A stretch of 64,000 bases of DNA from Lepidodermella squamata (Eukaryota > Animalia > Gastrotricha), in contig JBLDXI010000009.1 of the NCBI GenBank assembly GCA_047495785.1, positions 3,348,001 to 3,412,000 of the forward strand, written 5' to 3'. A program made the translations under genes and the position numbers. Numbering within the stretch: the stretch's first letter is position 1; every line of letters starts with the position of its first letter. Positions 1 to 24,928 of the stretch are shown here, one piece after another. A model generated the notes under the pieces. It had not been told where the DNA came from. It saw only the letters and a program-made list of their open reading frames with translations, and searched no databases.

Positions 1-472
1 TATTAGCAGAAAAGTTGCGATAAAATCCGAGAAGTTTTTCATGTAATGACCTAATTTCTAAAAGTTTAATTGGCCCTCACTAATAAGGAGGTCTTTTTTG
101 TCACAATAAATAATGATGCTAAACCGAGCAGCCGCAACGTGTCGCGTGGAATCCTGACACGATTTTCGTTTTAAAATAGCCATTTTCAAGGTAGACAACT
201 GGCTGATCCTCTCTTCGTGCAATCGAAATACAGTGCGGCAGCAAATCATAAGCGTTAGAACTCGGAACTGGCATACCATGGACATACTTGGACGTAGCAT
301 TAGGCGGTATCAGCGTCTCCCAATCTGGGTCAGAATCGCGGCACAGCCCAGCGCAGTGATGAATATAAATAGGATCGCCTCTTGGTATCAAGATATCACC
401 GGCAATTAGCCCGAGAGCTTTTGCGAAATCCTTTCTTGAAATCGGAAGTTTTCTTATAGTGCGTTCACAAAC

Positions 473-702
473 TACTTCGGAGAGGCGTCCGAAGTTTTCG
501 GCCTCCGAAGAATCGTAACAGGCCTCCGAAGTTGCGTAATCGCTGCCCGAAGTTTAGATTTTCGTTCACAAACGCGCGCACTTCGGCCGCGCTGCCCGAA
601 GTTTGAACAATAGACCCTCCGAAGCGGCGCGCGCGCACTCATCAAAGCACTTCGGTTCGGAGAGCCTGAAAACTACCCTCCGAAGTGCGTCCGAACCGAA
701 GT
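473..702. repeat. Left subterminal array of (CT)CCGAAGT / ACTTCGG motifs
   Basis: About a dozen copies in both orientations just inside the left TIR. Likely binding sites for the element's Myb-like protein. Confidence 0.75.
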
Positions 703-826
703 TTTAAAACAATAGAGTTGCTCGTCTGACAAGCAGTTACTTTATTGCCCAAGACTGCTGCAGTACAACAATTATTAGCTGAGTGAATGAACAGAGTAAA
801 AAACGAACGAGAGATACCAATAACAG

Positions 827-1928
827 TCAATAACCGAGAAGTTTGCGGCGAACGACGTCATTAATGTCGAAGTATAAGTGCGTAATTTCATGATCAGACA
901 AATTAGAACGCTCTAAGGCATTAAGAATAGAAGAAAACAGTTCATTTATGAAACGGCGGCGATCTGGCACGTCATCAGGCTCCAGCGACTGCAAAATGGC
1001 TCGCAGCGTCGGGTCTTCCTCGTTCTCACCGTTGTCACCGTTGCGCCGCTTCTTGGCCTTCTTGTAGCCGTTGGTAGCGACAGGTGTAGCGCTTTCGGCC
1101 GGCAATACGGCACTGGGCTGAGAAGCGGATGGCGGCAAAACATCTCCTTGAGAGTCATCGATCGGCTGTGCGGCGGCTTGATCGAAATGCGGCAGGTTGT
1201 CGTCGCCAGCGGTAGACGAGTCAACGCGATTGACGGCGGCAGTGGTGGCGGCGACGGCGGCGTTGCTTTGGCGGGAGACAGATGCCGGTGCGGAGTCGGC
1301 GGGCAGATTTCCCTTTGTTCTAGAAGAAAAACATGATTTTATTTATGAAACCAAAATTCATGATTTTTCAAACTTACTTGTTTTTGTACACGATGACGTC
1401 AGCAAGGAACGTCATGGCGTCGTAATATGGGAACCGGCTCTTCTTGTCAGCTGCAGCCGAGCCACTCGCGATGTAGGCCTTGTGGCATTTCGTAAATTTG
1501 TCCCGAAGCGAATCCCACATGTCGCGGGCTTCTTGGGCGGAGTACGGCTGCGGACCGGTTTGAACGGTGGCGGGTTTTAGTGGCAACCGTGTCGCCAGCG
1601 CGGCCCAATGGGTGTTTTTGAACACTACATCGCAGTACTTGGCGTCGGTGGGTCGCCAAAGGCACGGGTTGCACCGGACGTACTCGATGATGGCTGTGTC
1701 AACTTCGTTGCGGTGCTGATCGATTGAGATGCGGGATGACGACGACAACGACGACGACGAAGCTGGGCGAGTCGATTGCGACTGCGGTACCGGAGTGAGC
1801 GGCAGAGACGTTGAATGCCATGCTTGGGCTGGCTGCGAGTGAGGCGTCATGTTGTGGTATTGCGGCTGGCTGTCTTCAAAGCTGTTTTGGCTGGCTGGCG
1901 GGTAGTAGTAACGCATGTCGTTCATCAT
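827..1928 (-). CDS. Harbinger MADF (Myb/SANT-like) DNA-binding protein with a C-terminal BESS-like motif
   Basis: Two exons (1378-1928, 827-1319) join in frame across a GT-AG intron. MADF signature: IIEYVRCNPCLW...W...A..MWDSLRDKF...FPYYDAMTFL. C-terminus: LFSSILNALERSNLSDHEITHLYFDINDVV. Confidence 0.85.
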
Positions 1929-2179
1929 TTTCAGGCGAGTGAAATCGTAAAACTTCGAATAATTATAACGAGAACTGAAACCTTAGTGAGCAGAGCATTG
2001 CGTTTTATACCGCAAATTCCGCGCCACACTGAACACGCCCGTCAGTAATGATCAAAGGGCGCCGCCCAAGATGGCGCACGTTGGCGCAAATCTCGCAAGC
2101 TCGTCAGCTACCTTTTAATCCCTGGATCATTAATCTGCTCAGACCTACGCTAATCTTCTGTAATACTTCTGCTTTACTA

Positions 2180-2851
2180 ATGATCAGCAAGAAGAAGCGC
2201 ACGATTTTGGCCGTGGTCGACGCCAAGTACCGATTTGTTCTGGTGGACGTTGGCGCTCACGGACGTTTCAGCGACGGCGGCGTCTTCAAAAACAGCGGTT
2301 TGCTAGATTACTGCAACCAAACGACTCCAACCGAGGTCATGTCACTTCCGCCCTCTCACATCAAGGCGAATCACTATTTCGCCGCTGATGCCGCCTTTGG
2401 TTTGGATTGGAACCTACTCTCTCCGTACCCGGGCCAAACCACCGGCAATTTACCCGCCAACAAGCATACTTTCAACTACCGTTTGTCGCGCGGCCGTCGT
2501 GTCGTCGAAAATGCTTTTGGCATCGCATCGGCCCGATTTCGGCTGCTGCGCAAAACTATGGAGCTGTCGCCCGAGATGGCCGAGGACGCAGTTCTAGCGA
2601 TCACCGTTCTTCATAACTTTGCAATGGCCGAAGTCTCATCGTACCAAATCAGTGATCGAGAGGTGTGGGAGAGCTGGGAAGAGATCCAGAGCGAGGGCGC
2701 GCTGCCGAGTTTCATCCCTGAAAAGGTGCGCGACACCGGGAAGAAGGGCCTCGAACATGGTCAGCAGCTGCGATCAAATCTCACGTTGTGGTTTCAATCG
2801 GAGACGGGCATGGTTGATTGGCAGAGCAAAATGATAAATAAGAAGTATTGA
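2180..2851 (+). pseudogene. C-terminal half of a Harbinger (HARBI1-like) DDE transposase
   Basis: Motifs LAVVDAKYRF..VDVGAHGRFSDGGVF, FAADAAF and FNYRLSRGRRVVENAFG are present. The N-terminal helical region and the first catalytic GAIDG-type motif are absent; MISKKKR is fused directly to TILAVVDA. Confidence 0.85.
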
Positions 2852-3168
2852 TCCTCTTTGAAATATTGCTGAAATTTTTGCGACCGTTGAACTGCTGTTT
2901 CTCTCTTCGAAAATTGTGTCTCTCTTCGAAAATGTTGCCTAAAATTGAATAACGCCATTTATGTACTGCTTTTCATGTACTGTTTTTCGAAAAAATATTG
3001 ATTGAAAAATATTTCAATAAATTTTAGACGCTAGCGTTGCTCGTGATGTGAACATTTCGATTTTTCCATGTTCTTCGTGATTCGAGCAAAAATGGAGAAA
3101 AAATAGGACGTACAAATTCGAACCAAACCCGCGCCAGATGTGTCACGCGGTGTGAGAGCGCGCGGCCA

Positions 3169-3290
3169 AACTTCGGTCGTCACGCTGCGCGCGCGCGTAG
3201 AAAATGCCACTGATAAGGCCTCCGAAGTTTTGCTATTTCTCTCCGAAGTTTGCACTTCGCTCTCCGAAGCGTTCGGTCTCCGAAGTAGTT
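3169..3290. repeat. Right subterminal array of CTCCGAAG(T/C) / ACTTCG motifs
   Basis: Several copies of the same motif just inside the right TIR. Confidence 0.75.
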
Positions 3291-3628
3291 TGTGAACGCA
3301 CTATTAGACAGCAAAATGAGGATTGAGGATCAGTTCTAGTTTGGGCAAGGCACCAGGTTACACCCCAGGTTACCGGTGATTCAGTTGCAGGATTCAGCCT
3401 AGAAATTAAATATTTGAGATCCAAAAAAACTTCAAGATCTTAGATTATCATACCAAGTCTGTGCGTGGGAAAATTGGAAATTGGAAAGGTTCAATAATAG
3501 GAAAAAAATTATAATTTTGCTTTTTGTCATGGCTAAATTCGAGCTGGTAATTTTTTTATTTTCTCGTAATATTATGGAAAAATTATCATTAATTCCACAT
3601 AATTTATCAAGATTTTCTGGTTTTTTTC

Positions 3629-4180
3629 CTAAAGAACACAGCCACATGTGGTAGCGCTGAATGCGCTTAGATTTCGCCGAACCGTGTAACCACCCGATAC
3701 CACCAGCAATTCCAGCGGCTTTTTCGGCCCGATGGAAATGCATTTCGCCTCAATGTTGGGCAGATGGTGAACAAAACTCCAGATGGTAGCATTCGGCGAA
3801 ATTAGATGGTGCCAATTAGGATCTGCCTCGCGGCACAGCCCGGCGCAATAGGACATCGTCACGGTTGGGCCGAGGGGGAGCAGGATGTCTTTGGGGTCGG
3901 ATATTCCCAGAATTTCGGCGATGTAGCTTTTCGGCACTTTGTACTCGCGGAGGCAGCAATATGATTTGTTTGGATCTTCCCGAGTGTTCGAGCACTCTGA
4001 GATTCCAAAGTTCGGGGAAACCAAAGATTCAGACCTTGAAATGTTTTCAAATTGAAATTCAAAAAAATCAGTAAAAACAATTTACCACGCGTTGGCGAAT
4101 GAAATCAAAGCAAAAATTGTAAAATAAGCTAAATTGAAGTTCCCAGCTTCAAAATTGGAAAAACTAACAAGGAAAGACAT
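3629..4180 (-). CDS. Secreted TGF-beta-superfamily-like ligand, copy 2 (166 aa, no prodomain)
   Basis: Exon 1 (4086-4180) ends in hydrophobic ...YFTIFALISFANA. A 51-bp phase-2 intron splits a Trp codon, exactly as in copy 1. Exon 2 (3629-4034) carries C..CC..DILLP..YCAGLC..KC..CGC. Confidence 0.85.
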
Positions 4181-4701
4181 TTTTTCTGCCAAAATAAATT
4201 ATTAAAAATATGCGCAGAAGATGCGATGTTTATAACAGCCTGATGGTGTCGGCTAATTTTGTCTCGGATTATCGCGATAGCCCGATGTTAATCGCTTCAT
4301 TATAAAAAAACATACCTGGATTAATTAGGTGCCGCAAATTTGTGTGATAAAAATTGATACCTTGTTTTTCAACAGCTGCTATCGTTTATAATGGTACTGA
4401 ATAAGATTATTATCTCCACCGAAAATAGGGTTGCCATAAATGAGAGATTAATGAGGCCCAGTTTTGCCTCCCAGATGTGGAACATTACTAAACTAATTAT
4501 CATTTTTTACGGCAAAAATAACATTTGAAGACTGCTTCGAATTTTATTTTTCACACTTCGATAATGATTCTATTTGACGAAAGGCATTTTTTGGATGAAG
4601 GCCCTTAGAAATGTGTTCACAATTATTACCGACCGAAGGTGAAAGATGAGCTAGTTTTTATCTCAGTGAAATTGAATATTCTACGGAATTAGTCAATTAA
4701 T

Positions 4702-5365
4702 TCAAGCTGAACAGCCACACTGCCTAATATGAAAGTTTTTGATGGTAATGTTCCGGAATCGAGACCCGCCAAGCCGGCCGGACATTTCGTCTTCAATGTA
4801 CAACTCTTGCGATTTCACGATTTCCGAGTCGCCAATTAACGGGATGCATTTCGTGATTTGCGCGGCTAGGTGGTCGTTGAGCAGTTTCTGGATGAAAGTT
4901 GTCCGATTGTTGACGTGCAGGAAAGGCCAGTTTGGGTCGGATTCGCGGCACAGCCCGGCGCAGTATGGGACGTAGAGAACCATTGGTAGGATGATGTTAG
5001 GGTTCAGGATTTGGCGCAGTTTAGGTAGTTCGATCTGCATAGTCCGCATACAGCAAAAAGATTTGTAGGGTGTCTGATGTCGGGAAACTTCATCGCAATC
5101 CGCTGTATCACGCCTATTTCGGCTAAAAAAAAATAAAAAAATTATTACGAGAAAATTCGAATTTGTTGGAATCAAAGTTGAAATTTTTAGTTTGAAAAAT
5201 TTGAAATTTATAAAAAATTTTAAGAATTTACTGTTGCTTGTAGACGTAGTCCATGATTGCTTGGTGCGCCTTTTCAGGTGTCAAATGACCTTTGACCTCG
5301 ACCTCAGCCCCGACAACAGCAATGTAAACCAGGAAGAGTGAATAAATCGAATCGAAAAGTTTCAT
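4702..5365 (-). CDS. Secreted TGF-beta-superfamily-like ligand, copy 3 (184 aa, mini-prodomain with furin site)
   Basis: Exon 1 (5232-5365) encodes signal peptide MKLFDSIYSLFLVYIAVVGA plus about 25 aa. A phase-2 intron follows. Exon 2 (4702-5122) reads HRNRR|DTADC...FCC...NIILP...YCAGLC...KC...CGCSA. Confidence 0.87.
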
Positions 5366-5888
5366 ATTGCTAGACTAATCTAAGACTTGATTTGCTTTTA
5401 AGGTTAAACACGGGAAAAATTATATAGTTTCCTCTATGAACTAATTTTTTCGTTGTGTTGTGCGTTTGCGAGTGCGCTCGTGAAATTCCGCTTCTAATTC
5501 ATTCGAACTCGCCTTTCAAATTGTCAGCAACCTGTTATAATTAGTGCGGTTTTCATGCTTTTATATATAACAAGAACACGTAACGAAAACACGCTTCTTT
5601 ATTCACCCAACGTTTTTTTTACGCCATGAATGTTAAAAAAAAGAACAGAGCAAATTCCAGATTTTTATCAAGAAATAATTTATATAATATAATACACATC
5701 GAGTAACGGTCGTTTACGACCTATAAATAATTTACCATGGCCCGTATGATGACAGATAAATATATCAAGATGAATAATTTTTTACGTCCTTTTATATACT
5801 TCGATTAACGTGAGAAAGTGCGAAATTCTTTAAGGTGGAGTTATTAATTAGCGCGCGTTGATAAATAATAATACTGATTATAATTCGA

Positions 5889-7587
5889 CTACTTTTTCTG
5901 GCAAAACGTCAAATGCCGGTCATAGTTGTTGTGCCGCAGCATGCACTCTTTACAGCCCTGAGCGTTGAGGCCATGCGCTTCGTGAACCGCGTGAGGCGCA
6001 ACGAGGCGAGAAAATAGGAAGGTGTCCACAGCGAGGTTGTCGTGTTTCGCGAGTTGTAGCACCTTGGGAGCGTACGCCGGCATTGGGCGACCGTCGCGCC
6101 GGAACCCGGTCACCCAGTGGTTGGCCAGGTGGATTGGCGAGGCGAGGCTAACATGTCGCGAGTGAATTATATTCAACAGGTGGTGTTGCGAGGTATTCAC
6201 GGTTGATGTTAGATTTGCGCCCAGATGAGGGTAATGGCGGGCCGAGATCAAAGCTAACGAATGCCGCTGCTGGCCATAGGTGCCGAACCCAGCTTTTCCA
6301 GCGACCCACCAACATCGACGCTTCACAGAGGGTGCTTGCTGTAATAATTAAGGGCTTAATTCTGAAATTTAAAATGGAAAAAAAGAAACTAACCTGGAGT
6401 CTTAGCCGACCCCGCCGGCTAACGCAAACGAATTCGCGGGTTGAGAGGGTTTGGAGGGTAAAAAGACCCGATTTACCAGGTACTGGGCGCTCGATAAAAT
6501 ATGCTAAATTGGAGAAAGATAATGTTTAATGTCCTATATTATCGAAAAATACAATCGAAGGAAATCTCGAAGCCAGTAAATCTATATTAGGAATCAATGT
6601 CCCATTGAAAATTCCAAATTCCAGGGGAGAGAAATTTAACTACCAAACTTTCCAACAAGAATAAATTGCGTCCTATCGGGTAAATTATCATTTGTTCCCG
6701 AGCCTCTTACCAACGGGCTGCTGCCTTAAATTGAAAATTAAATTTAATTATTTAATTATTTAATTGATCGGAAATCTTCCTAAATATAATTTTTTTTTAA
6801 TTATGAATTTGTTAAAAATCGATGGAAAATTCGAAAATTCAAAAATGGTCGTTCAGTTAATGGGACCCAATTAATACAATTTATTAAATTTCTTATTCTA
6901 AATAAGTTTCTGAAATTAATTAATTAATTAAGAATTACTTGATTCATCATGAGGATCTTCGTGGTAGCTAGTCAACCGAAGCGAGGGTGCGTTGTAGCCG
7001 AATTCGTGGTACCGCATCTCCGCCGTATCGGTGCCTTCGACGCTATTACTGCTATCATCGATAATGTCGATGTCATCGCTAGGGGTCGAAATCGGCCGGC
7101 AAGATCGCCGCTCCACGAATTGCACAATGCAAGCCTGTTGTACTGGCGGTGCCGGGTTGGAACCGACTGGTAAAGGAGCTGGGTGATTGAGATCTGCCTC
7201 CCGCCTTTGTCTTCGATTTAGCGGAGGCCTCTGAAATATGCGTGCGATTTGACTAGTCAACAATGGATTGTTACTCTAAATAAAATTAAAGTTTTCTCAA
7301 ATTTACAGAAAATTAAATTAAATTTGGCTTACCAAATTATTTTTTGGCAAATTAATAACAACGGGCGTTGCTAAAGCCGTAGAAAAAATTAGCGACATGG
7401 CGGTGATGAATGAGATCAACAACAATAGGGTGAGCAACACGTAGCGCGACGATGAGGTAGGCGGTCGTTTGTCGGGGCGGGCGGCGATTACTAGCGGCAC
7501 TTTGGCGGGTAAAAATTCAACGCCAGTAATGAACAAGGCCGGCGGCTGCTGGGGCTGGTTATAAATTCTGTCGTTGTCCCATGACAT
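5889..7587 (-). CDS. Divergent fibroblast growth factor (FGF8/17/18-like) with an N-terminal hydrophobic anchor and furin site, ~410 aa
   Basis: Exons 7333-7587, 6939-7275, 6644-6724, 6394-6503 and 5889-6338 join in frame. FGF-core motifs: GLFTLQTLSTREFVCVSRRGRL, RRCWW, LALISARHY, HWVTGFRRDGRP, FLFSRL. The 110-bp exon is bounded by phase-1 and phase-0 introns, as in the conserved FGF middle exon. RRQRR precedes the core. Confidence 0.72.
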
Positions 7588-11700: not shown

Positions 11701-14700
11701 TTGATAATAGCACCATTTCCGAATCGACCAAGGTAATACCACCGCATTAATTTGCCCTTTAAAAATGGTTTTCGCACATTTGAGAAGTGTGCTCTCTACC
11801 CGGACAACACGTGGGCAGCTTTGCCCCAATTATAGGCTACATAATCATTTATAAAACCTAGCAGGGTAGGTTTCAAATTTCTGAAGAGATATTTCTGACT
11901 TCCCCACGGAAGTTGTCGGTAAGCTCAATCAGATAAAAGCGACATCGATCAGAAAATTATTTATAGAGATCAAAGACATTTTCTGTAAATTTGCTATCAC
12001 TTGACCGAGTCTTATCGAATAATCAATTTCAGCTTTTCAAATTATTTCTACTAAAAAAATTATTAAAAATCAGATAAAATTCTAAAATCCAGTTTTATGA
12101 CGATTGAAATTTTTTGTGAAAAATATCAAAAAAAAAATAAAAATTGAAACTGTAACAAAATATCGATGAATTCACTATACCTTTCTTGCCTGCTAAACTA
12201 CTGCCCTGTTCGCTGGTCAGAGCTGCGAGGTCGCCTAAACTTGGCCTCGAAACAATGACTGTAGTATGGCCGTAGCCGTCAACCAGCGACTGGGCAATAG
12301 CTCGATTTTGGTCGTTGAAATCGCCGAGCATACCGCCGCTTCCAGGCACCGGAACCGCCAGCAGGCCATTTGCACCAACAGCCGGCGGTACTACAACAGG
12401 AGAACACGGCTTGTTGAGCGATAGCAACGACTTGGCCAGTGAAGATTTATTGGTAGTCGCCGCGTTGGGCGTAGTTGAGAAAGCATCGTTTGAAACTAAC
12501 GACTCATTTTCTTCCTCCTGCGTCGGCAGCGTCGAGGCCTTGGCGTAGGAAGACGGCGCGTTGCCGTTGTTAGCAGCACCTGTTGGCCGGCGGGACGCGA
12601 GTAATTGCCGCCGCGTTTTCGCCAGTAACGACGCCCCGGCGCCATTTCGAGCCGCGCTAGGCCCGCGATAGCCCAGCACGCTTTTCTTGCCGCATAGCAA
12701 GCGTTTAAAAGCAGTTTGAAATTCGCGACTGTCGGCGCCGTAGATGAAAGGATTCATCAGGCTGTTGCAGTACCCTAGCCAGAACACAACTTTGAACAAC
12801 TGAGCGGGAATGCACTCGCAAAATGCATCTAAAAATTAGCGAAAAATTGGAACAATCAAAAAAACTCCTCCTTAAAATAATTACTAGTCGGTAGAATGAC
12901 GAAAAATGGAACCCAGCAGGCAATAAAGACTCCTACGACAATGCCAAGCGTTCGGGCTGCTCGCCGTTCCCGCTTGAACTTAGTCCAATCGATTTTTCCT
13001 GAAAAATAATTATAGGAAATTATTTGTGATAAAATGAAGTTTCAACATTAAAATTTGAAAAAATCATTAGGGGTTCTAAATCAGAAAAGACGTTTAGAGA
13101 TGACATGATATAATACAGGCACATCGACTTTGATGGGGCTAAGACTTTCCATCAGGAGTGAAATATTTAGCTTGCGACATGCTAAAGGAGGCCCGCTGCA
13201 TGCTAAAGGAGGCTATTCAGTTAAATGTGAGGGTATCATTAAATGTTGAGGGATTACAGGGAGAAAATGGTTATATAGGCTTACTTTGCCGTAGATTGGT
13301 GTCTATTGCCGCTGCGATATCGCTAGATATAGTGGAATCACGCTTGGAAGACCGCGCTGTTTGCATCTGATAATTACAGCCGCCTGCGCCGCCACCGGTC
13401 GACGACGCCGCGTGAACGCCGGTATGTATCCGCAACACGACGCCGTTCTCGCCTTTCGAGGTCATTTTCGCCTCTTTGTAACCCAGTTTCATGAACCTGA
13501 AATTATGCAAAAGTGAGTTTAAACAGTAAATTATTACTATAATAGAGATCGGTATTTTAAATTCCATAATTACATAAGGCTCTCATGAATACAACAATTA
13601 TAAAAAAATACAACTGATCTGACCTCAATTTTTTTGAGACTGAACTCAGGGGCGAATCCTAACCGCTAATTGCCCTATAGGTAAATACCGGACATTTTGC
13701 CGAAACTCAGATCAAAATGCCCAAATTCTCAAAAATTGCAGGTAAATCAGAAATAATCTTTGCTTGAAAAACCTAAACAAGATCCTTCAAAAGACTTCCC
13801 GAGGGAAAAAAAATTTCATCTATGAACGTGACGCCACGAGCATCAGTAGCCAACTCTCAAATTCTCTCAATAATAATAGAAACTGTGAAAAGTTTTGTAA
13901 TTTCAATTTTTTTAAGGGAAATTCAACTAATTATTTGAAAGTAAGCCAACTGGAGGAATCTTCCATCCTTTATCAACGATTTTACCGAAGAAAGTGAAAA
14001 TTTACTGGAGAACACCCTGAAAACCCCGATGGTAACCGATTCGGTAATTTTCGGGTTTTACCTGGTTGGATCCAATTTCTTCGGGGTTTTAATCCCATTC
14101 ACTAGAGACATACTTGAATACTATTCTTGTGCCATTTTAGATTGGTCTAAGATTTTTCTGGTCATGAGATAAGGCTTCCCCTCTCATTTTAGAGTTTCTG
14201 ATCCCTTCTCCGAGTAATTCCTTTGTTTGCGTTACTCATAGGACACGCTGTATTATAGGCATCTTGAAATTTCATGCCGCCAGGACACTGTGTACGTGCA
14301 GTAGAGAGAAAACTAATAAATAATGATCGCTCCTTACACACCCTCAATCGCTTCTTTCCATATTGGGATTTTGACGTTAATTTCGATATTTTATTAATGA
14401 GAAAATTCCCATGTACTAAGGTATTATGGCCCATACTTTTTTATATGATATTCTACTAGCCAAAAATAGCCTCGGAAATTTACAAACCGGAAGGAGGTGC
14501 TGCGGTTAAAATGTGTCGGTTCCAAAATTAATCCTGTCTAATATTAAACCTCAAATTAATAATGTAAACCTCGGATAATTGACCTTAGCAAGCGCAATAA
14601 AAAATGACAAACTAGGGCGATTTGTTTTTGTTAGTTTTAAAATTTAGACTACCTATATACAATTTTAGAGCTTCTACAGGAGAGTAAATATTTCTGGAAA

Positions 14701-15474
14701 TTAAGTGGAAATAAAGGCTTCTGCTTACCGAGTTTGTTGAATAGCTTTGAGATAGATGCGCCAATAAACAAGCATAACAACAGTACAAGGCAGAAAGAAG
14801 GAGCAGGTAGCACTGAAGATCACATAGGCCTTATCCTCGTTGACCTCACACCGGCCCGTCGACTCAACCGGCAGCGATTTACGCCAGCCAAAAAACGGTA
14901 CAACACAAATAGCCGCCGCTAATAGCCACACGCCTAAATTGATCAAAATCGCGCGTCGCTTGTTGACAATTTGATGGTGGACAAGCGGCTTTGAAACGCC
15001 GATGTATCGGTCGATTGATATAACGCAAAGGCCGTAAATTGACGCTGTACAACACAGCACGTCGATGGTAACCCACATGTCACACAGGGCCTGGCCGAAA
15101 ATCCAATATTCATCCAAAATTTCGATGGTCGTAGAGAACGGCAGGACGGTTATGCCTAGCATCATGTCAGCTATTGCCAAATTGACGATGAAGTAATTAG
15201 TCGCGGTTCGGAGTTTACGAGTTGTTACAACAGCGAGTAGGACGAGCAGATTGCCGCAAACCGTGCATAGGCATATTAGGATAAGCGGAAAGGCGATTGC
15301 GATCGAGCGAGCTGCGTCGAGAGTTGGAAATTCGGGCGGGCTCGCTTCGGGTGGTTCGGAATTAAATTCGGTATAATTAAACGCACCGCCATTCGCGCTG
15401 TTGTTAAACGCCGGCGCCATGACGAGAGAAACGTCTCGAACTAGCCCGTTGACAAAAACAGGCGTCTGGTTCAT
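8707..15474 (-). CDS. Alpha-1-adrenergic-like (aminergic class A) GPCR with a very long C-terminal tail
   Basis: Exons 14729-15474, 13285-13496, 12885-12998, 12181-12828, 10930-11315, 10032-10388 and 8707-9420 join in frame (1058 aa). Motifs: [23 protein letters not shown]5 S5.42/S5.46, ICL3 [27 protein letters not shown]. The receptor core is certain; attachment of the last three exons is inferred. Confidence 0.8.
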
Positions 15475-18400
15475 GGTGCTGATGGCGCTTATTACGGTGG
15501 CGGTGTGCGTCGTTAGAGCCGCAAAAATGCATCACGTCGGCGTCTTTTCTCGCGCACGATTATCCCCAATTTGTCAAGGGGTGGAGTCGAGCGCATATTT
15601 TATGTAAAAGTGAACGCACTTTTTGTGCCTATATGCCTAGAGTTCAGAAATCAATATACAGCGAAGGTGTTATTTGTTAGTAGTTGGATCGTTCACTACA
15701 ACTACCACTAGGCGCGAAATTCGCCCACGTAAATATGATAATGAGTTTGGGCGAGTTAATTTATACCTGTAATTTGCGCCGGTCACGGTACGCAGTTCGG
15801 CGCGCGGGCAAAAAATTGCTCTACCTATAATACAGATGAATAAAAATCGTATTGTTTATAGCGAAGCGCTGCGGGCTGCCGATTACTTTAGCCGCACCTT
15901 TTTATTAGAACTTATAACTTTACCTACATATCATATAGTATGTTTTTATTGCAGGGCTCGTCTACAATAGATAAGAACGGCAGGCGGTGATTTTTTTGCA
16001 GCGAGAAGCGCGCTAACAATAACAACAACCTAGCCTCATCGTGATGTTCGAGCTAGCGGCAATAAAACCCAACGCGCGTAGTGTATAATGCGTTCCATAT
16101 TTTGCAAGCTCGCACAAGGGGGAAGTTTCGGCGACCGATTATTGTTGTTCTTAGCGCGCATATATTCTCTGAACGAACTCAGATAACGAGGCATTGAAGT
16201 TTGGCGATTGTGCGCAAAAAACTAGCCCACAGTAAGTAATTAGACTATCAGGGTGCGTACAAAAAATGTGCGCGTCCGCTTAATAATTGTTTATTGCTAT
16301 ATAAAAAGCCGTGCTAAAAATAACAAATAATTTTTGGTAATAATGAAACTGATTGATATGATGTCTTCCAGCTTTCACAATAAAAAGAAGGTCAATACCT
16401 GCTTGGCCGGTATCTTTTTTCAAGGCTGTAATGAGATACAGAAGCGTGTAAAAATATTTGCACAAATATCAGTGAGAATTGAGAAAATATTAGGATTAAA
16501 TTAAAAAAAATCTGCAGTAAAAAAATTTCCGTGCAGCAGGTCTCTATACTTTCTTTCATCAACTCAGCGATAAATGCAACGGCGCGCATCACGTGACAGA
16601 GATCAGCTGTCGTCACAGCGTCATCGCTCATTTTTTAATGATATGATAAGGAGAAAAAATTTAATAAATATTGCAAGCTAGTGAAATTAAAACCGTGAAC
16701 TCCTAGATTCACTAAAATTTTAGTCTAACTACAGCATGGGCCCACGAGCGCACCCTCTTGAAAGCATAGCTGCTTTCCCGTTCATAAATAAAATCTAACC
16801 AAAGCGCTCTCTGTGTATATTTTGTAATATAAAAATGATGTTTAAAAATTTAGTGCTAAAAATAAAAGCAAATTATTAGAGCGCATTATCTCAACATAGT
16901 AACAATACATGAAAAAAAAAGTCGATAACATCGCTTTTCACTGGTGTTTAGTAGCGATTTTGAAAATTATTGCGCTAAGCCGGTAGCCATTGATTTAGCG
17001 AAAAATTTCCTGCCCATGTTTGCTATTGCGTATCACAAAATTCTTGCTGCTGTAATGGCCATGCAATGTAATCCTTCGTATTAGAACGAAAAGATTTCTA
17101 CTCAAGCTATAGGTGTACATAAATGTTAAAAGATTAAAGAATATATAAAAATGAACTTGATAAATAATTTTTTGGCTAAGAAAGGCGTAAGGTTATTTAT
17201 TTTATTGTGGAGCATATTCGTACATACATGGGCTATAGGCGATAAATTGTAGCCGATAAATTATTACTATACACTCGAGGATGAAAATGACGAAACGTAC
17301 AGCGTTTTAAAATGAATAAAATCGCCGTTTGTGTGCCGTTCGATGGTTCGAGTCGCGACGAAGATGCGATACGGGTCGCGAAAAACGCTCCCACGAGGCC
17401 GCCTGCAAAGCGCAGAGTGACTACAAGCATTTTTCATTCGCGTGCATATGTCGTATAGTAAAAAAAAAAAGATAATAATAATTATGTTTACAGTATTATA
17501 CTTTCCTGCCCTCTATGCTTTTACGTCGTATTAACGTGATCGTACGCAGTAAAATGTTAGAGAAGGTATTAAAATTATGAATCCGATATTGATTAGGCCG
17601 AAGTTAATGCTCGAATCACCCCTAAAGCGAGACAGCAGGTCTAGAAAACGGGACTTCGTCTATACTAGCCTAATTAAAAGGATGAAATAAAAAACAAGGC
17701 GCCAAAGTCCCGCACTATCATTTCTTCAAAAAACGTACACTCAATTCTACAAAAAAAACGTACATTTGTGCACTAAAAATTGAAATTAATAATGCAGGAA
17801 TTTGCCAGTGAATAAATGACGCTGAAAGGTGGATGAAAAAAGCACGCTGAGTGTGAAAGATATATTACTTTTGCTGAAAGGATGGGTTCAATAGAATTTT
17901 CATTCTGTCCAAAACCCAAAAGACAGCAAAAAAATTACGAATGTCAGAAACAAAATCCAAGTACTATAATATTATTGTTGATTTTCTTAGAATCAATGTT
18001 TGGAGTTTTACTTATATAAACTAATCGCGTATACGAAAAGGTGGGCAAAACCCACTTCAGGAATTTTCATAATACTATGTAGCGTAAAAAGAAAGCCGGC
18101 ATTGCGAAGCGATAAAGCTTAGTGATTTAAAAAAGGTCCAATTTATATTGCCTATCTCGGCCACTTAACTGCGATATTATTGACCAATAAATCGCAATTG
18201 AAAAAAATCACCTTATTTAGTATTGCATTTTGACAATAAAAAGATGGAAGACTTCATATTTGGAGTACAAACGTTTTTTTAGGAATATTGTAAATTATTA
18301 TATAAAACTGAGCTTATATATTATTGCTATTTATTGCAACATCGCGACAGTAATGATTGCCAATTTTTTGTGCCGTATTGCCGGGTTTAATCGATGTCTT

Positions 18401-20095
18401 GAAGAAGAACCGTAGTACATCGGATCTCGCGAAGCGTAAATTGGTTGTCTTATATGTCTCATCAAATCATTGTTAATTTTTTCAAGCATCACAAGCATTG
18501 TCGACGGTGCAATTTATACGCCAAAAAGAATAATACATATATAGAAAAATGGAAAAAGCTATATGATGAAGATAATGTTTGTTTTGGACGCCTGAAAAAA
18601 TAATGTGATATGCGACCAATAAGTCGCTCGAGTTTTTTAATTGAATTTTACGTATATAAGTAAAAGAGCCGACAATTTTATCGCAATTTTTTTTACGCAA
18701 AATAATGGAATGTATACCTATTTTCATATGAAACAGGATGATTAAATTTTACCCTATCGCCACATATAATAAGATACATAGATGCAAAGGCCAAATATCC
18801 GGCCATCCGAGTAAAAACTGACAGCGAAAAAATTTATTTTAACTGATAATAAAATATACTCGTAAATACAGTGGAAGTCACATCGTTTTAAAAGATTCTA
18901 TAAAAAATGAGACATCCATCATTATACTGAATTTTGTATCAAAGATTGCGTGCCCGAGCGGAAGCCGGCGTCAATTTGTAACTTGGTTTTTATGGCGATT
19001 ACGCAGAATTTAAGGGAAAAATCGACGTCAACAAAATTTGCGCGCATAAGAACATACATATCTCGTAAGCTAATATAATTACACTCGATATTCGACCTCA
19101 ATTTGGCAAATAATCTTGCATGATTTCTTGCGGCTGTATTGAAAATCAATTTCTCAACGGGCTTAATTCCCTCTCTGAGTCGAAACCTAAATTTACTATA
19201 AAAAGAAGAGGAAACATATAATGGGAACGTCCTAAAACTCCAAACTATAAACAAGCATGTGTCACGATTTTTCTCACACTTGCGTCATCATGCGGAAAAA
19301 TACGCGCTCCAGACAGGGTCTCAAAAAAAATAAGAGACAATGGCGTGCGTAAAATGGAAAGGATAATCTACTAATTTTCAGATAATTCAAAAATCCATAT
19401 CCAAAAAATCATGATTAATATACGAAATATAAGACGATGTGTTAAGTGCGCTCAAGACCACTTATTCAGTTATCCAGCCGTTGTTTACTTATCCATGCGT
19501 GTAACTTCCAAGGTATTTCCGCCTCTTAAGACGGCTCTGAACGATGGGCCAGCTATATTGCAAGTACGATAAAAGGTGTGAGGAAAAAAGTCGGAGTTAG
19601 GTAAATGCGCTGATTATCACCTCTCAACCATATAAAATAATTCGGGCAATAAAGTCTTTATATGGTTGAAATTTATTAACATTAAAATATTCGAGGTGAC
19701 ATCAAATTATGTTCTCACAGTATTGCAGCTTTTACGCCTGCAAATGACGTCTCAAAGAGATCAAAATTAATTCGAAACATTCTGAACAATAAGGGGCTAT
19801 AATGTATTTTCAGCAAATACTTAATGCTATTCGATACGATAATGACAGGATGCTTTTGACGAGCCGGCAAACCAACCCCCAACTATAATTTGTATCGCAA
19901 GAATTTGCACTGGAAATTTACAAAAAAGTTTATTTTATTCAAAAAACATGAAACAGGTAAAAATATAACCCATTGATTTTCACAAGATATCGCTTACGAA
20001 ATTATCATAATCACTTTTTGTTATTTCATTCAATCAGCATTCAGCCTTTGTAATTTACTACTTTTTCAATTAAACAGTATCAAATTTCAGAGAGT

Positions 20096-21542
20096 TTACA
20101 TATTTACAGGTTTGCTGTTGTTGTTGTTGTTATTGATGTTAGCGTTATTGTTTTCTTCATCCTGCCTATTATTGTTATTAGTAGCAGTCGGCTTGTTATT
20201 GAACATGCGATCGCGCCATTTGGCCCAAATGTTAGCTATCTCGTGATTACTCATCGCGTAAATGAACGGATTGGCGATTGAGTTTGAGTACGACAGCCAC
20301 ACAGCGGCCTTGAACATGTAATTAACCAAGGTCACGCCCCACTTTTTCGTTCGAAGTGTGCGCTCAAACACGCCGATTGAGTCAAGCAGGAGAAGGCAGA
20401 AAAACGGCGACCAGCAAATGATGAAACAGCCTAAAATTCGGCCGAGTAAAACTTTAGTTCGAAGAGCTACGCCTTTTTTCGGCTTCGACTTCTCCTCGCC
20501 TTTCACCGCTGATTTTTGTGATGAAACAGCTTTATGAAGCTGGTGGTGGTGGTGGTGATGGTGATGATGATGGTCATCATGTGAGCCTGAATGTTCGTTG
20601 TTGACCCCGTCCTTTTCAACGGGAAATGGCCACAGTTGGGTGACAAGTAACGGCGCAGCTTGGCACAACTGGTCCAGTTGCTTTTTAGCCCCGAAGTAAA
20701 TTCTCAAATAAACAAAAGACATGACAACACAGGGTAGCCAGTAAGAAATCGCGCTTGAAACCAGGGCGAAGATCGGGTTCACCTCAAACCGGCAAATTTC
20801 GGTTGTTGAGTTGAATAAAGCTGGTTTGCCTGATTTCGAATGAAAGTGAAGATGAACTGGAACGTGGGATAGGACAAAGCTGACGATCCATGCTAATATC
20901 ACAATGCCAATGGATACTCGGCTTGTCATCAGTGAGCTGTAGCGAAGTGGCTTGAACACGGCGATGTAACGCTCGACGGCTATGCACATGATGCCGAGTA
21001 AGGAAGCCGTGCAGAAGAAAATGTCGTTGCCGATGAAAGTGTCACAGCCGAACTGGCCGAATGGCCAGTAGCCAAGTGCGTTTTGCACGATGTGTAGCGG
21101 CATGACAATCAGGGTGACTAATAGATCGGCAACGGTGAGTGCGAAAACAAAAATTAGATTCGTTTTTTTCGACCTCAACCCTCGGACAGCAAACAGGCTA
21201 AAAAAACAGAAAAGATTCACTTTGTTGCTATGGAAAATTCAATTTAAGCGTCCTTAGCAACCGATGATTCAAACTTTCGTACCTTCCTAACACGAGGAGA
21301 TTTCCTACGAGTGAAAATAACAGAATGAAAATTTGGATGAGGGTTTCCACGGCGAGAATGATTGATTGCCAACTGCCGTCGTTGCCGTCAGACAGCGGCA
21401 TTTTTTGCGTTAAAAGGATATCAGAAGGCGGGGCTTTCGTACTGCGCCTCAGCACCCCGAACGGTACAACAGGCGGTGCTGTCCAATGAGAATTGTAAAT
21501 CTCATCGTCGATTATACCACTTGTAAACTGGATGACGGACAT
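20096..21542 (-). CDS. D1-like dopamine/biogenic-amine receptor, paralog A
   Basis: Exons 21283-21542 and 20096-21197. Motifs: GYWPFG..C, D3.32 in NDIFFCTAS, ERY, TM5 SSAIS, CWSPFF, NPFIY. Poly-His run in ICL3. Confidence 0.8.
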
Positions 21543-22378
21543 GTTTTAGTTTTCTAAAAATGTTAGCCTAAAAAATGGGTTTTTAGGAAAACTTATAAGC
21601 AATCGAGAACGATTATCGGCTCGCGCTCTGCTTAGATATATAAGGTTTTCATTTATGACGAGTCAAAAACTGCGTAAGCTCACAAGGTATGCGATGTAGG
21701 CGTACATGAGGGAATCCGTTGTTTGAGGCGTGAGGCGCATGATAACTGCCGTGAACAAGGTAATTTCGCCTCGCTCACACTTTCATCGCGAGGCGACGCA
21801 TATCGCATTTCTGCCGAGCGAAAAACGCTACTCAGTTTTCGCGTGAGCCGCGCTGCGCAAAATACACTGATGATTATAATTAGCGGCTCAAACACAAGGG
21901 CGAGATCGGCGTTATTATCACCTGTGCTGTGCTGGCGAAAACAACGGGATGATTTTGATTCGATCATCAATTCTCACGGCGCGCCCTGATCGAAATCGGA
22001 TCGTCCTCTAGCAAACAACTCGTGGACCAAAAAAATAAAAAATACGGCTGGGAAGATTATCGAATCATTACGGTCAGATGAATTAAAAACAAAAAAGTTC
22101 AATTATCCTTTTAATCATCAGCGTAAAAAAAATATAAAATAAGTCTGTGCATTGTTTTTACTCTCAGTAAAAAATCACGACATGAAAATTGTAGATGTTC
22201 TCAAATATCGCGTTTGTAAAAAAAAATTAGGAGACAAGAACGTATGAGAAGAACGCCTTGATTCCGCATATTTTGAAAAATTACTGTATAATTTCCGTGA
22301 AAATTTAATATAGCATTTCAAGACTCTTCCCACTGGCAATTTGTGAATTCGAAGATTTTGATACATCATAACATGGCA

Positions 22379-24928
22379 TCAAGTTACTGGAAGATGCGTT
22401 TTCATTTGAAGTTCGCCATAGCGACTACAGTCGCATGAGCTTTTCGTCGATTTGGAAGGCGTTGTAGCTTGGTTACTATTATGTCCGTTAGCTAGTTGCG
22501 TCGGGTTGTTTTGGCTGTCTTTACGGCTGGCGACCATGGGCGACGTACTCGCTGTTGTTGTATCGCTGTTGGCGGTCTTGAAGCAACGCTGCTTGCTGCG
22601 ATTCAGCTGGAAGCATTTCGCGGCACAGTAGGTCTTGAAGCGACTCCATAGCGGGTCGAATTCGCGGTTGCTCAGGGCATACTAAAATGAAAAGTAATTA
22701 TTCAAAATTCAGTTTTAAATTTTTTCATTTTTTAGCTTAATTTTAAATTTTTTTAAATTTAAAATTTAATTTCCATTTTTTTAATATTGGAATCGTAATA
22801 TTTCAACCGGTCATAATATTTGACAGTCTTTCGATGCTTATTCGCCTACTTCTTTGAAGTGGCTTTAAATTGGCTGGGTTGCGTCTTTTACTCTTCCACC
22901 CGACATTCTAAATTCCAATGTTAAGAATCAATGTTCAAAGTATAAGACACGCATGTTCGCCATTCAAACGTGCTAATTTCCTCTGATTTTTCGCGCACTT
23001 CCTACAGTGAAAATTTTGTCCCGAGAAAATGATAATGATTCATATGAGATTGACCTATATTTCCCAGAAGCATGCGGCTAATGAGAGGAATCGATTATTG
23101 GCAAAATTTGGGCGGAATTCGCTTATATTTTAATTGGTTCTCTCAAAGGTCCTTCCATCTTGTATTATCGAAATTAAAATTAAATCTTACAATGAAAGGA
23201 TTTGCAGTTGAGTTAAGATAGCCGAGCCATAGCGCGGATTTGAAGAGCCAGCCGTATTTCTCCGGATCGAGGGGCTCGGCTAAGAAGGCCGTGTCTACAA
23301 CCAGGAGAGTGAAGAAAGGAAACCAACACAACCCGAAACAGCCGAGAATTCGACCTGAGGAAAAAATTACTAAAATTTGACAAAATTAAATGATTATATC
23401 CGGCCTACCTAAAGTGACTTCAGTACGTAAATTAGCCGATTGATTCGAACCTTTTCGCCTAAATGAAAATTTCGACAGCGATAATTTGGACCATTTTGAC
23501 CCGCCGGTGGCTCCAGTTGAACTTCTTGATTGAGCAGGCGCCGATAATTGGCGAGAAGCCAACAGTTTACCCCTGAAATAAAATGGCGTGGAAATGCTGG
23601 AAAAATAAGCGATTTTAATGACTCACTTTTCTTCGTTATTACACGTGCTTAGATGCCGGTTAAATTTAACATCTCGCCCCGTGCTAATCTCACGGGTATC
23701 CATGGTGTTCGATGTAGTGCTCGCCCCAGGTGCCTCATTCTTTCGCTCAGATCCGCCGCGCGATTCTACCGATGACGGTTTATAGCTAACCGATGAGGCC
23801 TTCGCCAATGCGTAGAGTTGCCGCTTCGCAGCCACGTACATTCTCGCGTAAACAAATAGCATAATTCCGGTTGGGAACCAGAAAGAAACCATGGAAGAAG
23901 CTAGGGCGTAGTAAGGATTCACGTTGAACCCGCACACTGTTATATCATCCTCTTGATTTGCCGAACTGTTGCCAACCTGGCTCGAATTTCCAGCAACTAT
24001 GTGCCAGTCTAATTGAACGGGAATGTAGGATATTGCCAGGCTTAACACCCAAGCCATGCACGTCATTGAAACAGCGACTTTTGTCGTCATTAAAGAGCTA
24101 TATCGGAGGGGTTTAAATACGGCTACGTATCGTTCCATCGCTATGGTGATGATGCCAAGCAGCGAGGCTGTACAAAAGAACACGTCATTTGCGATGAAAA
24201 TTTTGCAGAACGAAGCGCCGAATGGCCAGTAGCCGCTTATATTTTGGACAATGTGAAAGGGCATGACGCAAATTGCAACTAGAAGATCGGCTGATGCGAG
24301 GGACATTACGAAGATGACGTTCGATTTCTTGGCTCGTAATCGATTAAACATAGCCAAGCTAAAATTTAAAAAAATGAAAAATTAGGGGCTCAAAATATTG
24401 GAATAATTTTTCCGAGAAAACTCGCTCAATAAAATTCAGAAAAATCCTCCTTAAATTTTTAAATTTTTTATTTTTTTATAATAATATTTAATTTTTTGTA
24501 TGATTTCCATTATTTTATTTTATTTTTGTTTATTTTATTATTTTTATTTTTTGGGTAGAAACCATCGTTTTCCCAACTAACCTCAAAATGACGAGAACGT
24601 TTCCAACAATTGACAATACAACCACGAGAATTTCTAGTATAGCCTCAGCAACGATGGTCCAGTCAGCTCCGTTCTGTTTCGCGTCATTGCCAGATCTCGA
24701 AAAATCACTCGCGAGACCTGAACTGTTGCGAAAGGTGCCAAAGACTTGCGAGGCGAAGACAATGTAATCGAGGTTAGCGCTATCCTCTTGCTGCCGATCG
24801 AAGCCACTCGTCGTGTCATCATAGTCGCTGATGAAAAGCGGCAAGGCAGTTGTAGACACCCTGGGTCTTAGTACCGTGATAGACGGTGGCGGCGGTGGGG
24901 TGGTGCTGATTTTTGATAAACTCCTCAT
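22379..24928 (-). CDS. D1-like dopamine/biogenic-amine receptor, paralog B
   Basis: Exons 24582-24928, 23627-24358, 23409-23572, 23191-23354 and 22379-22681. Motifs: D1-type ISYIPVQLDWH, NDVFFCTAS, ERY, YALASSMVSFWFP, CWFPFF, WLGYLNSTANPFIY. Confidence 0.82.

Follow-up and report, generated by a model that had tools for sequence, protein, structure and literature searches.

The window analysed here, a stretch of 64,000 nt of Lepidodermella squamata DNA (contig JBLDXI010000009.1; all coordinates are window positions), carries on its minus strand, between 119 and 5365, three co-oriented two-exon genes for small proteins resembling ligands from the TGF-beta (transforming growth factor-beta) superfamily. 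We refer to them as copy 3 (184 aa), copy 2 (166 aa) and copy 1 (168 aa). They share one design, in which an ATG exon with a hydrophobic signal-peptide core is followed by a GT..AG phase-2 intron (55 nt in copy 1, 51 nt in copy 2 and 109 nt in copy 3) and by a cysteine-rich exon, whose product ends in CGCSV in copy 1 and in CGCVL or CGCSA in the other copies. The copies match one another by tblastn with E values of 1e-11 to 1e-26, neighbouring copies are 28-38% identical, and the gene pattern is well beyond chance; no fourth copy was found by tblastn within the window. A previous sequence-only reading had proposed three co-oriented genes of 166-184 aa, each composed of a signal-peptide exon, a phase-2 intron and a knot exon. 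The lengths were reproduced and the design holds for all copies, but a transposon that splits the knot exon of copy 1 had been overlooked. The features are presented in Table 1.

Table 1 Positions and characteristics of the TGF-beta-like genes and of the inserted transposon
Feature	Position	Strand	Characteristics
Copy 3 exon 1	5232-5365	-	Predicted signal peptide (MKLFDSIYSLFLVYIAVVGA) and most of the short pro-piece; phase-2 end; hydrophobic core Kyte-Doolittle (KD) 2.67
Copy 3 intron	5123-5231	-	109 nt, GT..AG, phase 2; intron of the orthologue on contig L004 in the same phase
Copy 3 exon 2	4702-5122	-	Furin-type RNRR (5121-5110), 8-Cys TGF-beta-like domain, stop; PF00019 22.3 bits
Copy 2 exon 1	4086-4180	-	Predicted signal peptide alone, end ...SFANA/W, phase 2
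Copy 2 exon 2	3629-4034	-	Mature TGF-beta-like domain without a basic cleavage site; PF00019 23.5 bits
Copy 1 exon 1	3454-3530	-	Predicted signal peptide (MTKSKIIIFFLLL...SHA), phase 2
Copy 1 exon 2, 5' part	3304-3398	-	Up to the CC motif; stops at the transposon target duplication 3304-3306
Copy 1 exon 2, 3' part	119-453	-	Residues after CC, CAGLC, to CGCSV and stop; PF00019 15.1 bits for this part alone
PIF/Harbinger DNA transposon in copy 1 exon 2	457-3303		2,847 bp, terminal inverted repeats, TTA duplication, two open reading frames

The family to which the cysteine-rich exons belong was assessed by means of profiles and predicted folds. All five members available, namely the three copies and two proteins of a second species described below (P0001 and P0002), matched the Pfam family PF00019 (TGF_beta), with a best E value of 1.6e-6; for the window copies E ranged from 1e-4 to 4e-2, and in both complete copies (2 and 3) the match spans model positions 2-104 of 104. 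A profile built from the five sequences found 37 PDB sequences at E<=1, and all 37 were TGF-beta-superfamily ligands. The best of them was an activin A/BMP2 chimera (E 8e-5); inhibin beta-A (E 4e-4) gave an alignment that begins at the N-terminal CC and runs to the CGCS at the C-terminus, and BMP6, GDNF and GDF5 matched at ~2e-3. The AlphaFold2 model of copy 2 (predicted local distance difference test (pLDDT) 68.8, core 74-85; predicted template modelling score (pTM) 0.60), which is of moderate quality, gave a fold with two fingers, wrist and knot. Foldseek comparison of this model with the PDB returned chains of activin, TGF-beta, myostatin, BMP, GDF5 and GDF11 as all of its top 50 matches (best E 6e-5), with template modelling (TM) scores by matched chain of 0.55-0.68 for mature-ligand chains.

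The same assignment was obtained with VIA-align, a Foldseek-independent aligner, in a sweep of 48,161 representatives in which Z differences within 1 are ties. The top 10 all belonged to the TGF-beta superfamily (Z 5.6-7.8), and the values included GDF15 at 7.8, myostatin at 7.5, TGF-beta2 at 6.7/6.5, GDNF at 6.5/6.3, AMH at 6.4 and artemin at 6.0/5.9. VEGF/PDGF chains reached Z 5.6-5.2, and the glycoprotein hormone, DAN and CTCK families at most 5.0. Feature and shape searches in the ESM Atlas likewise indicated TGF_beta. Membership in the superfamily, as put forward in the sequence-only reading, is thus borne out by profile and predicted fold: all copies match PF00019, though under its gathering cut-off, and the predicted fold of copy 2 groups with TGF-beta ligands and not with another cystine-knot family. 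The other knot families considered (PDGF/VEGF, glycoprotein hormone, DAN, CTCK, Norrin, NGF and Spaetzle) were rejected as the primary assignment, as they rank under the TGF-beta-superfamily chains in the VIA-align sweep.

The cysteine pattern is uniform. Each of the five members has exactly 8 Cys, arranged as C-x(11-13)-CC-x(29-35)-CxGxC-x(30-36)-C-x(31-42)-CxC, with canonical spacing of the six-cysteine knot and with the C-terminus 1-2 residues after CxC. TGF-betas, activins, GDF8/11 and GDF15 share a canonical nine-cysteine pattern, and the pattern observed here is the same minus the interchain (dimerising) cysteine: ahead of finger 2, the CC of canonical ligands corresponds to a single C that follows K, H or R. 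The extra N-terminal C/CC pair, which had been noted before as typical of the TGF-beta/activin/myostatin type, does align to the CC of inhibin beta-A in the profile comparison. In place of the canonical DWIIAP, the copies read DILLP, NIILP or QIVVP. Directly after the CxG of CxGxC stands a new motif, LCR-x-x-DP-x-W, which is invariant, and shortly past it an NxT sequon is present in four of the five members. Neither the missing interchain cysteine nor the loss of the finger-1 tryptophans had been remarked on before.

In well-studied members of the TGF-beta family, the prodomain guides folding, dimerisation and latency. A large N-terminal prodomain (latency-associated peptide (LAP) or TGFb_propeptide) was found in none of the copies. 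Between the predicted end of the signal peptide and the first cysteine, copies 1 and 2 have about 14-15 residues and copy 3 has 33, a stretch that in copy 3 includes EVEVKGHLTPEKAHQAIMDYVYKQH-RNRR. Copies 1 and 2 had been described as having neither a pro-piece nor a furin site, and indeed the signal peptide leads straight into the mature domain in both; copy 3 is the only one with a pro-piece, which ends in RNRR as claimed and measures ~29 aa and not ~25 aa. Furin-type RxxR sites occur in copy 3 (RNRR) and in its orthologue (RMKR), and there are none in copies 1 and 2 or in P0002. The gaps between the genes, only 98 bp (copy 2 stop to copy 1 ATG) and 521 bp (copy 3 stop to copy 2 ATG), are too small to harbour hidden prodomain exons.

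Does this architecture exist outside the window? A profile search among 1.84 billion representative proteins gave two matches at E<=1e-3, P0001 (134 aa) and P0002 (148 aa), and a word-index search with the five-sequence alignment returned only the same two. A word-index protein search with copy 2 gave no match, and a scan of JGI metagenomes with the alignment gave 282 pattern matches, none of which was confirmed. With only two relatives among so many proteins, the family is extremely lineage-restricted, as had been supposed. P0001 and P0002 are encoded on eukaryotic contigs (L004 and L001, respectively) of ENA metagenome assemblies, and these contigs are from another species because they have no nucleotide similarity to the window.

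P0001 is the orthologue of copy 3 (57% identical). Upstream of it, contig L004 contains an exon with a signal peptide and the piece ...QAYQTITDYARQQQ, followed by a phase-2 intron, and exon 2 opens with G-RMKR-QTSECDE. Conservation between copy 3 and P0001 thus extends to the mini-propeptide with its A-x-Q-x-I-x-DY motif, to the furin-type site and to the phase of the intron. In P0002, signal peptide and knot lie in one uninterrupted open reading frame, the first cysteine being separated by 5 residues from the predicted cleavage site, which lends the absence of a prodomain independent support. Since a form with a pro-piece (P0001) and a prodomain-less form (P0002) are both found there, the two architectures predate the split of the two species. 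Their conservation supports a function. It gives no evidence for the stepwise prodomain loss that had been suggested for the window: both architectures already exist in the second species, and neither an intermediate series nor a polarity is shown.

Copy 1 is interrupted by a DNA transposon with every feature of a PIF/Harbinger element: it is bounded by terminal inverted repeats and a 3-bp duplication (TTA/TAA) of the target, and it contains open reading frames for a DDE_Tnp_4 transposase and for a second protein of Myb/MADF type. The repeats are perfect, 26 bp long, and located at 457-482 and 3278-3303; the TTA target duplication flanks them at 454-456 and 3304-3306; and the reading frames are those of a MADF/Myb protein (1374-1928, minus strand; MADF E 4e-13) and of the transposase (2048-2851, plus strand; E 3e-23). 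The assembled frame of copy 1 meets a stop 24 codons into the transposon. The 168-aa product is obtained only with the transposon and one TTA duplication removed, the frame then being continuous over 3398-3304 and 453-119. Such an empty site appears to be present in a DNA run (X2) in which 84% of the words sampled from the stretch occur: one of its contigs passes directly from 453 to 3304, exactly 2,850 bases (the transposon and one duplication) being absent, and other variant positions in this contig have roughly half the depth. Hence the insertion seems to be polymorphic, with copy 1 intact on the other haplotype, and in the assembled haplotype copy 1 is knocked out by a recent, apparently still polymorphic insertion.

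The transposon itself looks complete, with both reading frames open. In run X2, the depth at its ends is 1,100-5,800, compared with ~60-80 in flanking single-copy DNA, and internally deleted forms are present (joints 898 to 2514 and 1368 to 2208). These observations suggest an abundant, recently active family with derivatives resembling miniature inverted-repeat transposable elements (MITEs).

Another question is whether the proteins are maintained by selection. The window was compared with a second haplotype or strain in the X2 contigs; the counts refer only to the differences listed and are indicative. They comprise at least 10 synonymous and at least 3 non-synonymous differences in copy 2, at least 4 and at least 2 in copy 1, and at least 1 of each in copy 3, in total 15 synonymous and 6 non-synonymous among those listed. 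From the CC motif onward, all 12 of the differences listed are synonymous, and the non-synonymous ones fall in the N-terminal tail or the pro-piece. This distribution is indicative of purifying, not diversifying, selection on the predicted knot.

The idea that the copies are functionless, decaying mature-domain remnants of canonical ligands whose prodomain exons have been lost appears very improbable to us. The assembled copy 1 is broken by a transposon, the Pfam scores are sub-threshold and the transcript evidence is very thin, all of which would agree with decay, but every frame is open and has a signal peptide and consensus splice sites, the 8 Cys are retained in five members from two species, within the knot none of the differences listed is non-synonymous, copy 1 apparently has an intact allele with the empty site, and the pro-piece with its furin site is kept in the orthologue. 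Judged by these sequences, the genes are real and selectively maintained, and they make up a small, lineage-restricted branch of the TGF-beta superfamily.

The same evidence bears on a further possibility, namely that the knot scaffold has been reused for a non-signalling secreted role (in defence, mating or adhesion, or as toxins) in a fast-evolving tandem family. We regard it as unlikely. The tandem array with neighbours at 28-38% identity, the very narrow phylogenetic range, the loss of the receptor-contact hallmarks (the tryptophans and the dimer cysteine) and the new invariant motif after CxGxC would all suit such a role; however, among the differences listed the knot is under purifying and not diversifying selection, and an orthologue with 57% identity is kept in the second species.

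Expression was considered in a second run (X1), which is RNA by guess only. Its single-copy cover extends over 4554-5032 without a mismatch and is thinner up to ~5290, which corresponds to exon 2, the 3' untranslated region and part of exon 1 of copy 3; copies 1 and 2 and the intergenic DNA have no cover in this run. Run X1 thus weakly supports transcription of copy 3 only. It also contains opposite-strand joints 86-122 nt apart (window 800-967, 4577-4780 and 5168-5290). In the 98-bp gap between copies 2 and 1 (3530-3629), AATAAA occupies 3560-3555 and TTACCAG, which resembles an acceptor, 3550-3544; comparable acceptor-like motifs lie directly upstream of the other two ATGs. With such tight spacing and these motifs, the promoters could be very compact, or transcription could be of operon style and involve a spliced leader.

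As for the neighbouring genes, an FGF-like gene (5889-7134) flanks copy 3 upstream, and P0002 lies ~600 bp upstream of an FGF-like homologue (L001 3101-3920; 42-65% identity per exon). The FGF-like gene and its linkage to the TGF-beta-like family are thus conserved. Farther along the window (12095-24928), several exons of rhodopsin-type G protein-coupled receptors follow one another on the minus strand (12095-15474, 20096-21220 and 23623-24357), and a 7tm_1 gene is situated directly upstream of P0002 on L001. The window also has a CCT-eta exon, whose closest named matches are mollusc, brachiopod and hemichordate proteins (77-79% identity) and which shares 93% and 87% identity with environmental sequences. 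Short introns and TTTCAG-like acceptors might point to a nematode, but this origin was rejected on the strength of the CCT-eta matches.

Taken together, these data make it probable that the copies are functional secreted proteins of the TGF-beta superfamily that fold without a prodomain. The encoded proteins would be secreted and probably N-glycosylated. Maturation of copies 1 and 2 would involve cleavage by signal peptidase alone, while copy 3 would undergo a further cut by a furin-type convertase after RNRR, which would free a propeptide of ~29 aa. Because the interchain cysteine is absent, the mature proteins would act as monomers or as non-covalent dimers. TGF-beta-type receptors would be the likeliest targets, on which they may act as ligands or as competitive modulators; given that they lack both the dimerising cysteine and the finger-1 tryptophans, they seem at least as likely to be antagonists or modulators as Smad-activating agonists.

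Several observations weigh against this interpretation. The Pfam scores of the window copies (15-23.5 bits) are under the gathering cut-off of 27 bits, and the AlphaFold2 model of copy 3 is poor (pLDDT 55), its Foldseek matches being all TGF-beta ligands but weak. Both finger-1 tryptophans are gone from the W-x-x-W-I-I-A-P region, and with this motif and the interchain cysteine missing, it is very uncertain whether the proteins bind canonical receptors. The joint that reveals the empty site in copy 1 has a shorter side of 27 letters, below the 31 advised. At least 30 further variants exist beyond those listed, and the X2 contigs could mix paralogues. In run X1, guessed to be RNA and covering copy 3 only, no spliced joint or transcript start was seen, and its fold-back joints look like an artefact of an amplified library, which limits inference about transcripts. 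Finally, chains of GDF15 and of the GDNF family score about as well as those of activin, so the sub-branch is not separated; a tree with activin, BMP and GDNF references would be weak at about 20% identity over ~100 sites.

This last point leads to the question of whether the copies could be GDNF/GDF15-type ligands, signalling not through Smad but via a GFR-alpha-like co-receptor and a RET-type tyrosine kinase. GDNF, neurturin, artemin and persephin are distant members of the superfamily, with which the copies obtain comparable profile and fold scores, and GDNF-family ligands signal via RET and GFR-alpha; to our knowledge, they are considered vertebrate-type. GDNF chains are among the best PDB profile matches (E 2.4e-3 vs 4e-4 for inhibin beta-A), and the top VIA-align match is GDF15 in its complex with RET and GFRAL (Z 7.8), with GDNF and artemin at 6.0-6.5, although values within 1 are ties. 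GDNF-family ligands also resemble the copies in their short pro-regions and in the absence of finger-1 tryptophans. Their cysteine pattern, however, is the opposite: their 7 Cys comprise the interchain one, and the N-terminal C..CC is absent, whereas the copies have 8 Cys with the N-terminal C-x(11-13)-CC and without the interchain cysteine. We therefore consider this affinity quite improbable; under it, the copies would be superfamily members with a short propeptide and would extend to invertebrates a system whose ligands are otherwise considered vertebrate-type.

The interpretation of the copies as TGF-beta-superfamily proteins folding without a prodomain can be compared with known ligands. 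Activin/inhibin beta, GDF8/11, TGF-beta1-3 and GDF15 have the same CxGxC...CxC knot with near-canonical spacing and the extra N-terminal C..CC, and the best fold matches of the copies are ligands of the activin/TGF-beta branch. Copy 3 resembles this branch further in that its furin-type RNRR lies a few residues before the first cysteine and is followed by DCDE. In contrast to the branch, the copies are without the prodomain of 150-300 aa, have K, H or R instead of the interchain cysteine, contain the new LCR-x-x-DP-x-W motif and score under the Pfam cut-off. The dimerising cysteine is likewise absent from GDF9, BMP15, GDF3, Lefty and C. elegans TIG-3, but these proteins retain full prodomains and furin sites. 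TIG-3 has a lysine in place of the interchain cysteine, and GDF9 and BMP15 form non-disulfide-linked dimers (PMC11210861). Among worm, fly and mouse members of the family, all 45 that were analysed could be split into prodomain and ligand at a furin-type site (Wisotzkey and Newfeld; PMC7017013).

A further parallel is man-made. The engineered mmTGF-beta2-7M is, like the copies, a single-chain TGF-beta knot without the interchain cysteine, ~10 kDa in size, and its structures 5tx2, 5tx4, 5tx6 and 8dc0 were among the Foldseek matches. As a monomer it binds TGFBR2 and blocks signalling, acting as a type II receptor-binding antagonist, and when secreted without a prodomain it largely misfolds (bioRxiv 10.64898/2026.03.23.713733). 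The copies differ from it in being natural, in having apparently evolved to do without the prodomain and in retaining the length of the wrist-helix region. A more specific proposal, which we advance only tentatively and hold to be rather doubtful, is that the copies belong to a natural clade that folds and is secreted without prodomain or covalent dimerisation, its members being monomeric receptor-occupying modulators and thus the natural equivalents of engineered mini-monomer TGF-beta antagonists, and that the conserved furin-released helix of ~29 aa in the copy-3 subtype serves as a minimal chaperone or latency peptide.

Short avipoxvirus proteins with a TGF-beta fold (BFVD, 141-158 aa) share the fold of the copies and have no detectable sequence relationship to them, and the same lack of relationship applies to a nematode-rich ESM Atlas cluster with a 162-aa PF00019 protein and no propeptide family listed. 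Short forms therefore have precedents, in proteins that may be prodomain-less or may be fragments. A search of the literature by phrase gave nothing relevant on prodomain-less TGF-beta ligands, and proteins that combine a nine-cysteine-type N-terminus with the lack of both prodomain and dimer cysteine, whose genes form a tandem array and which are conserved in two species, have apparently not been described.

The copies would represent natural test cases for folding and signalling without a prodomain and without a dimerising cysteine, and the pairing of prodomain-less and mini-propeptide subtypes in two species offers a ready comparison for experiments. If our interpretation is true, a natural prodomain-less family would show which sequence features enable autonomous folding of the TGF-beta knot, and its members could serve as models for small receptor modulators that can be delivered genetically. 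The case would further show how a core developmental ligand family can be reshaped into a tandemly expanding, lineage-specific secreted family.

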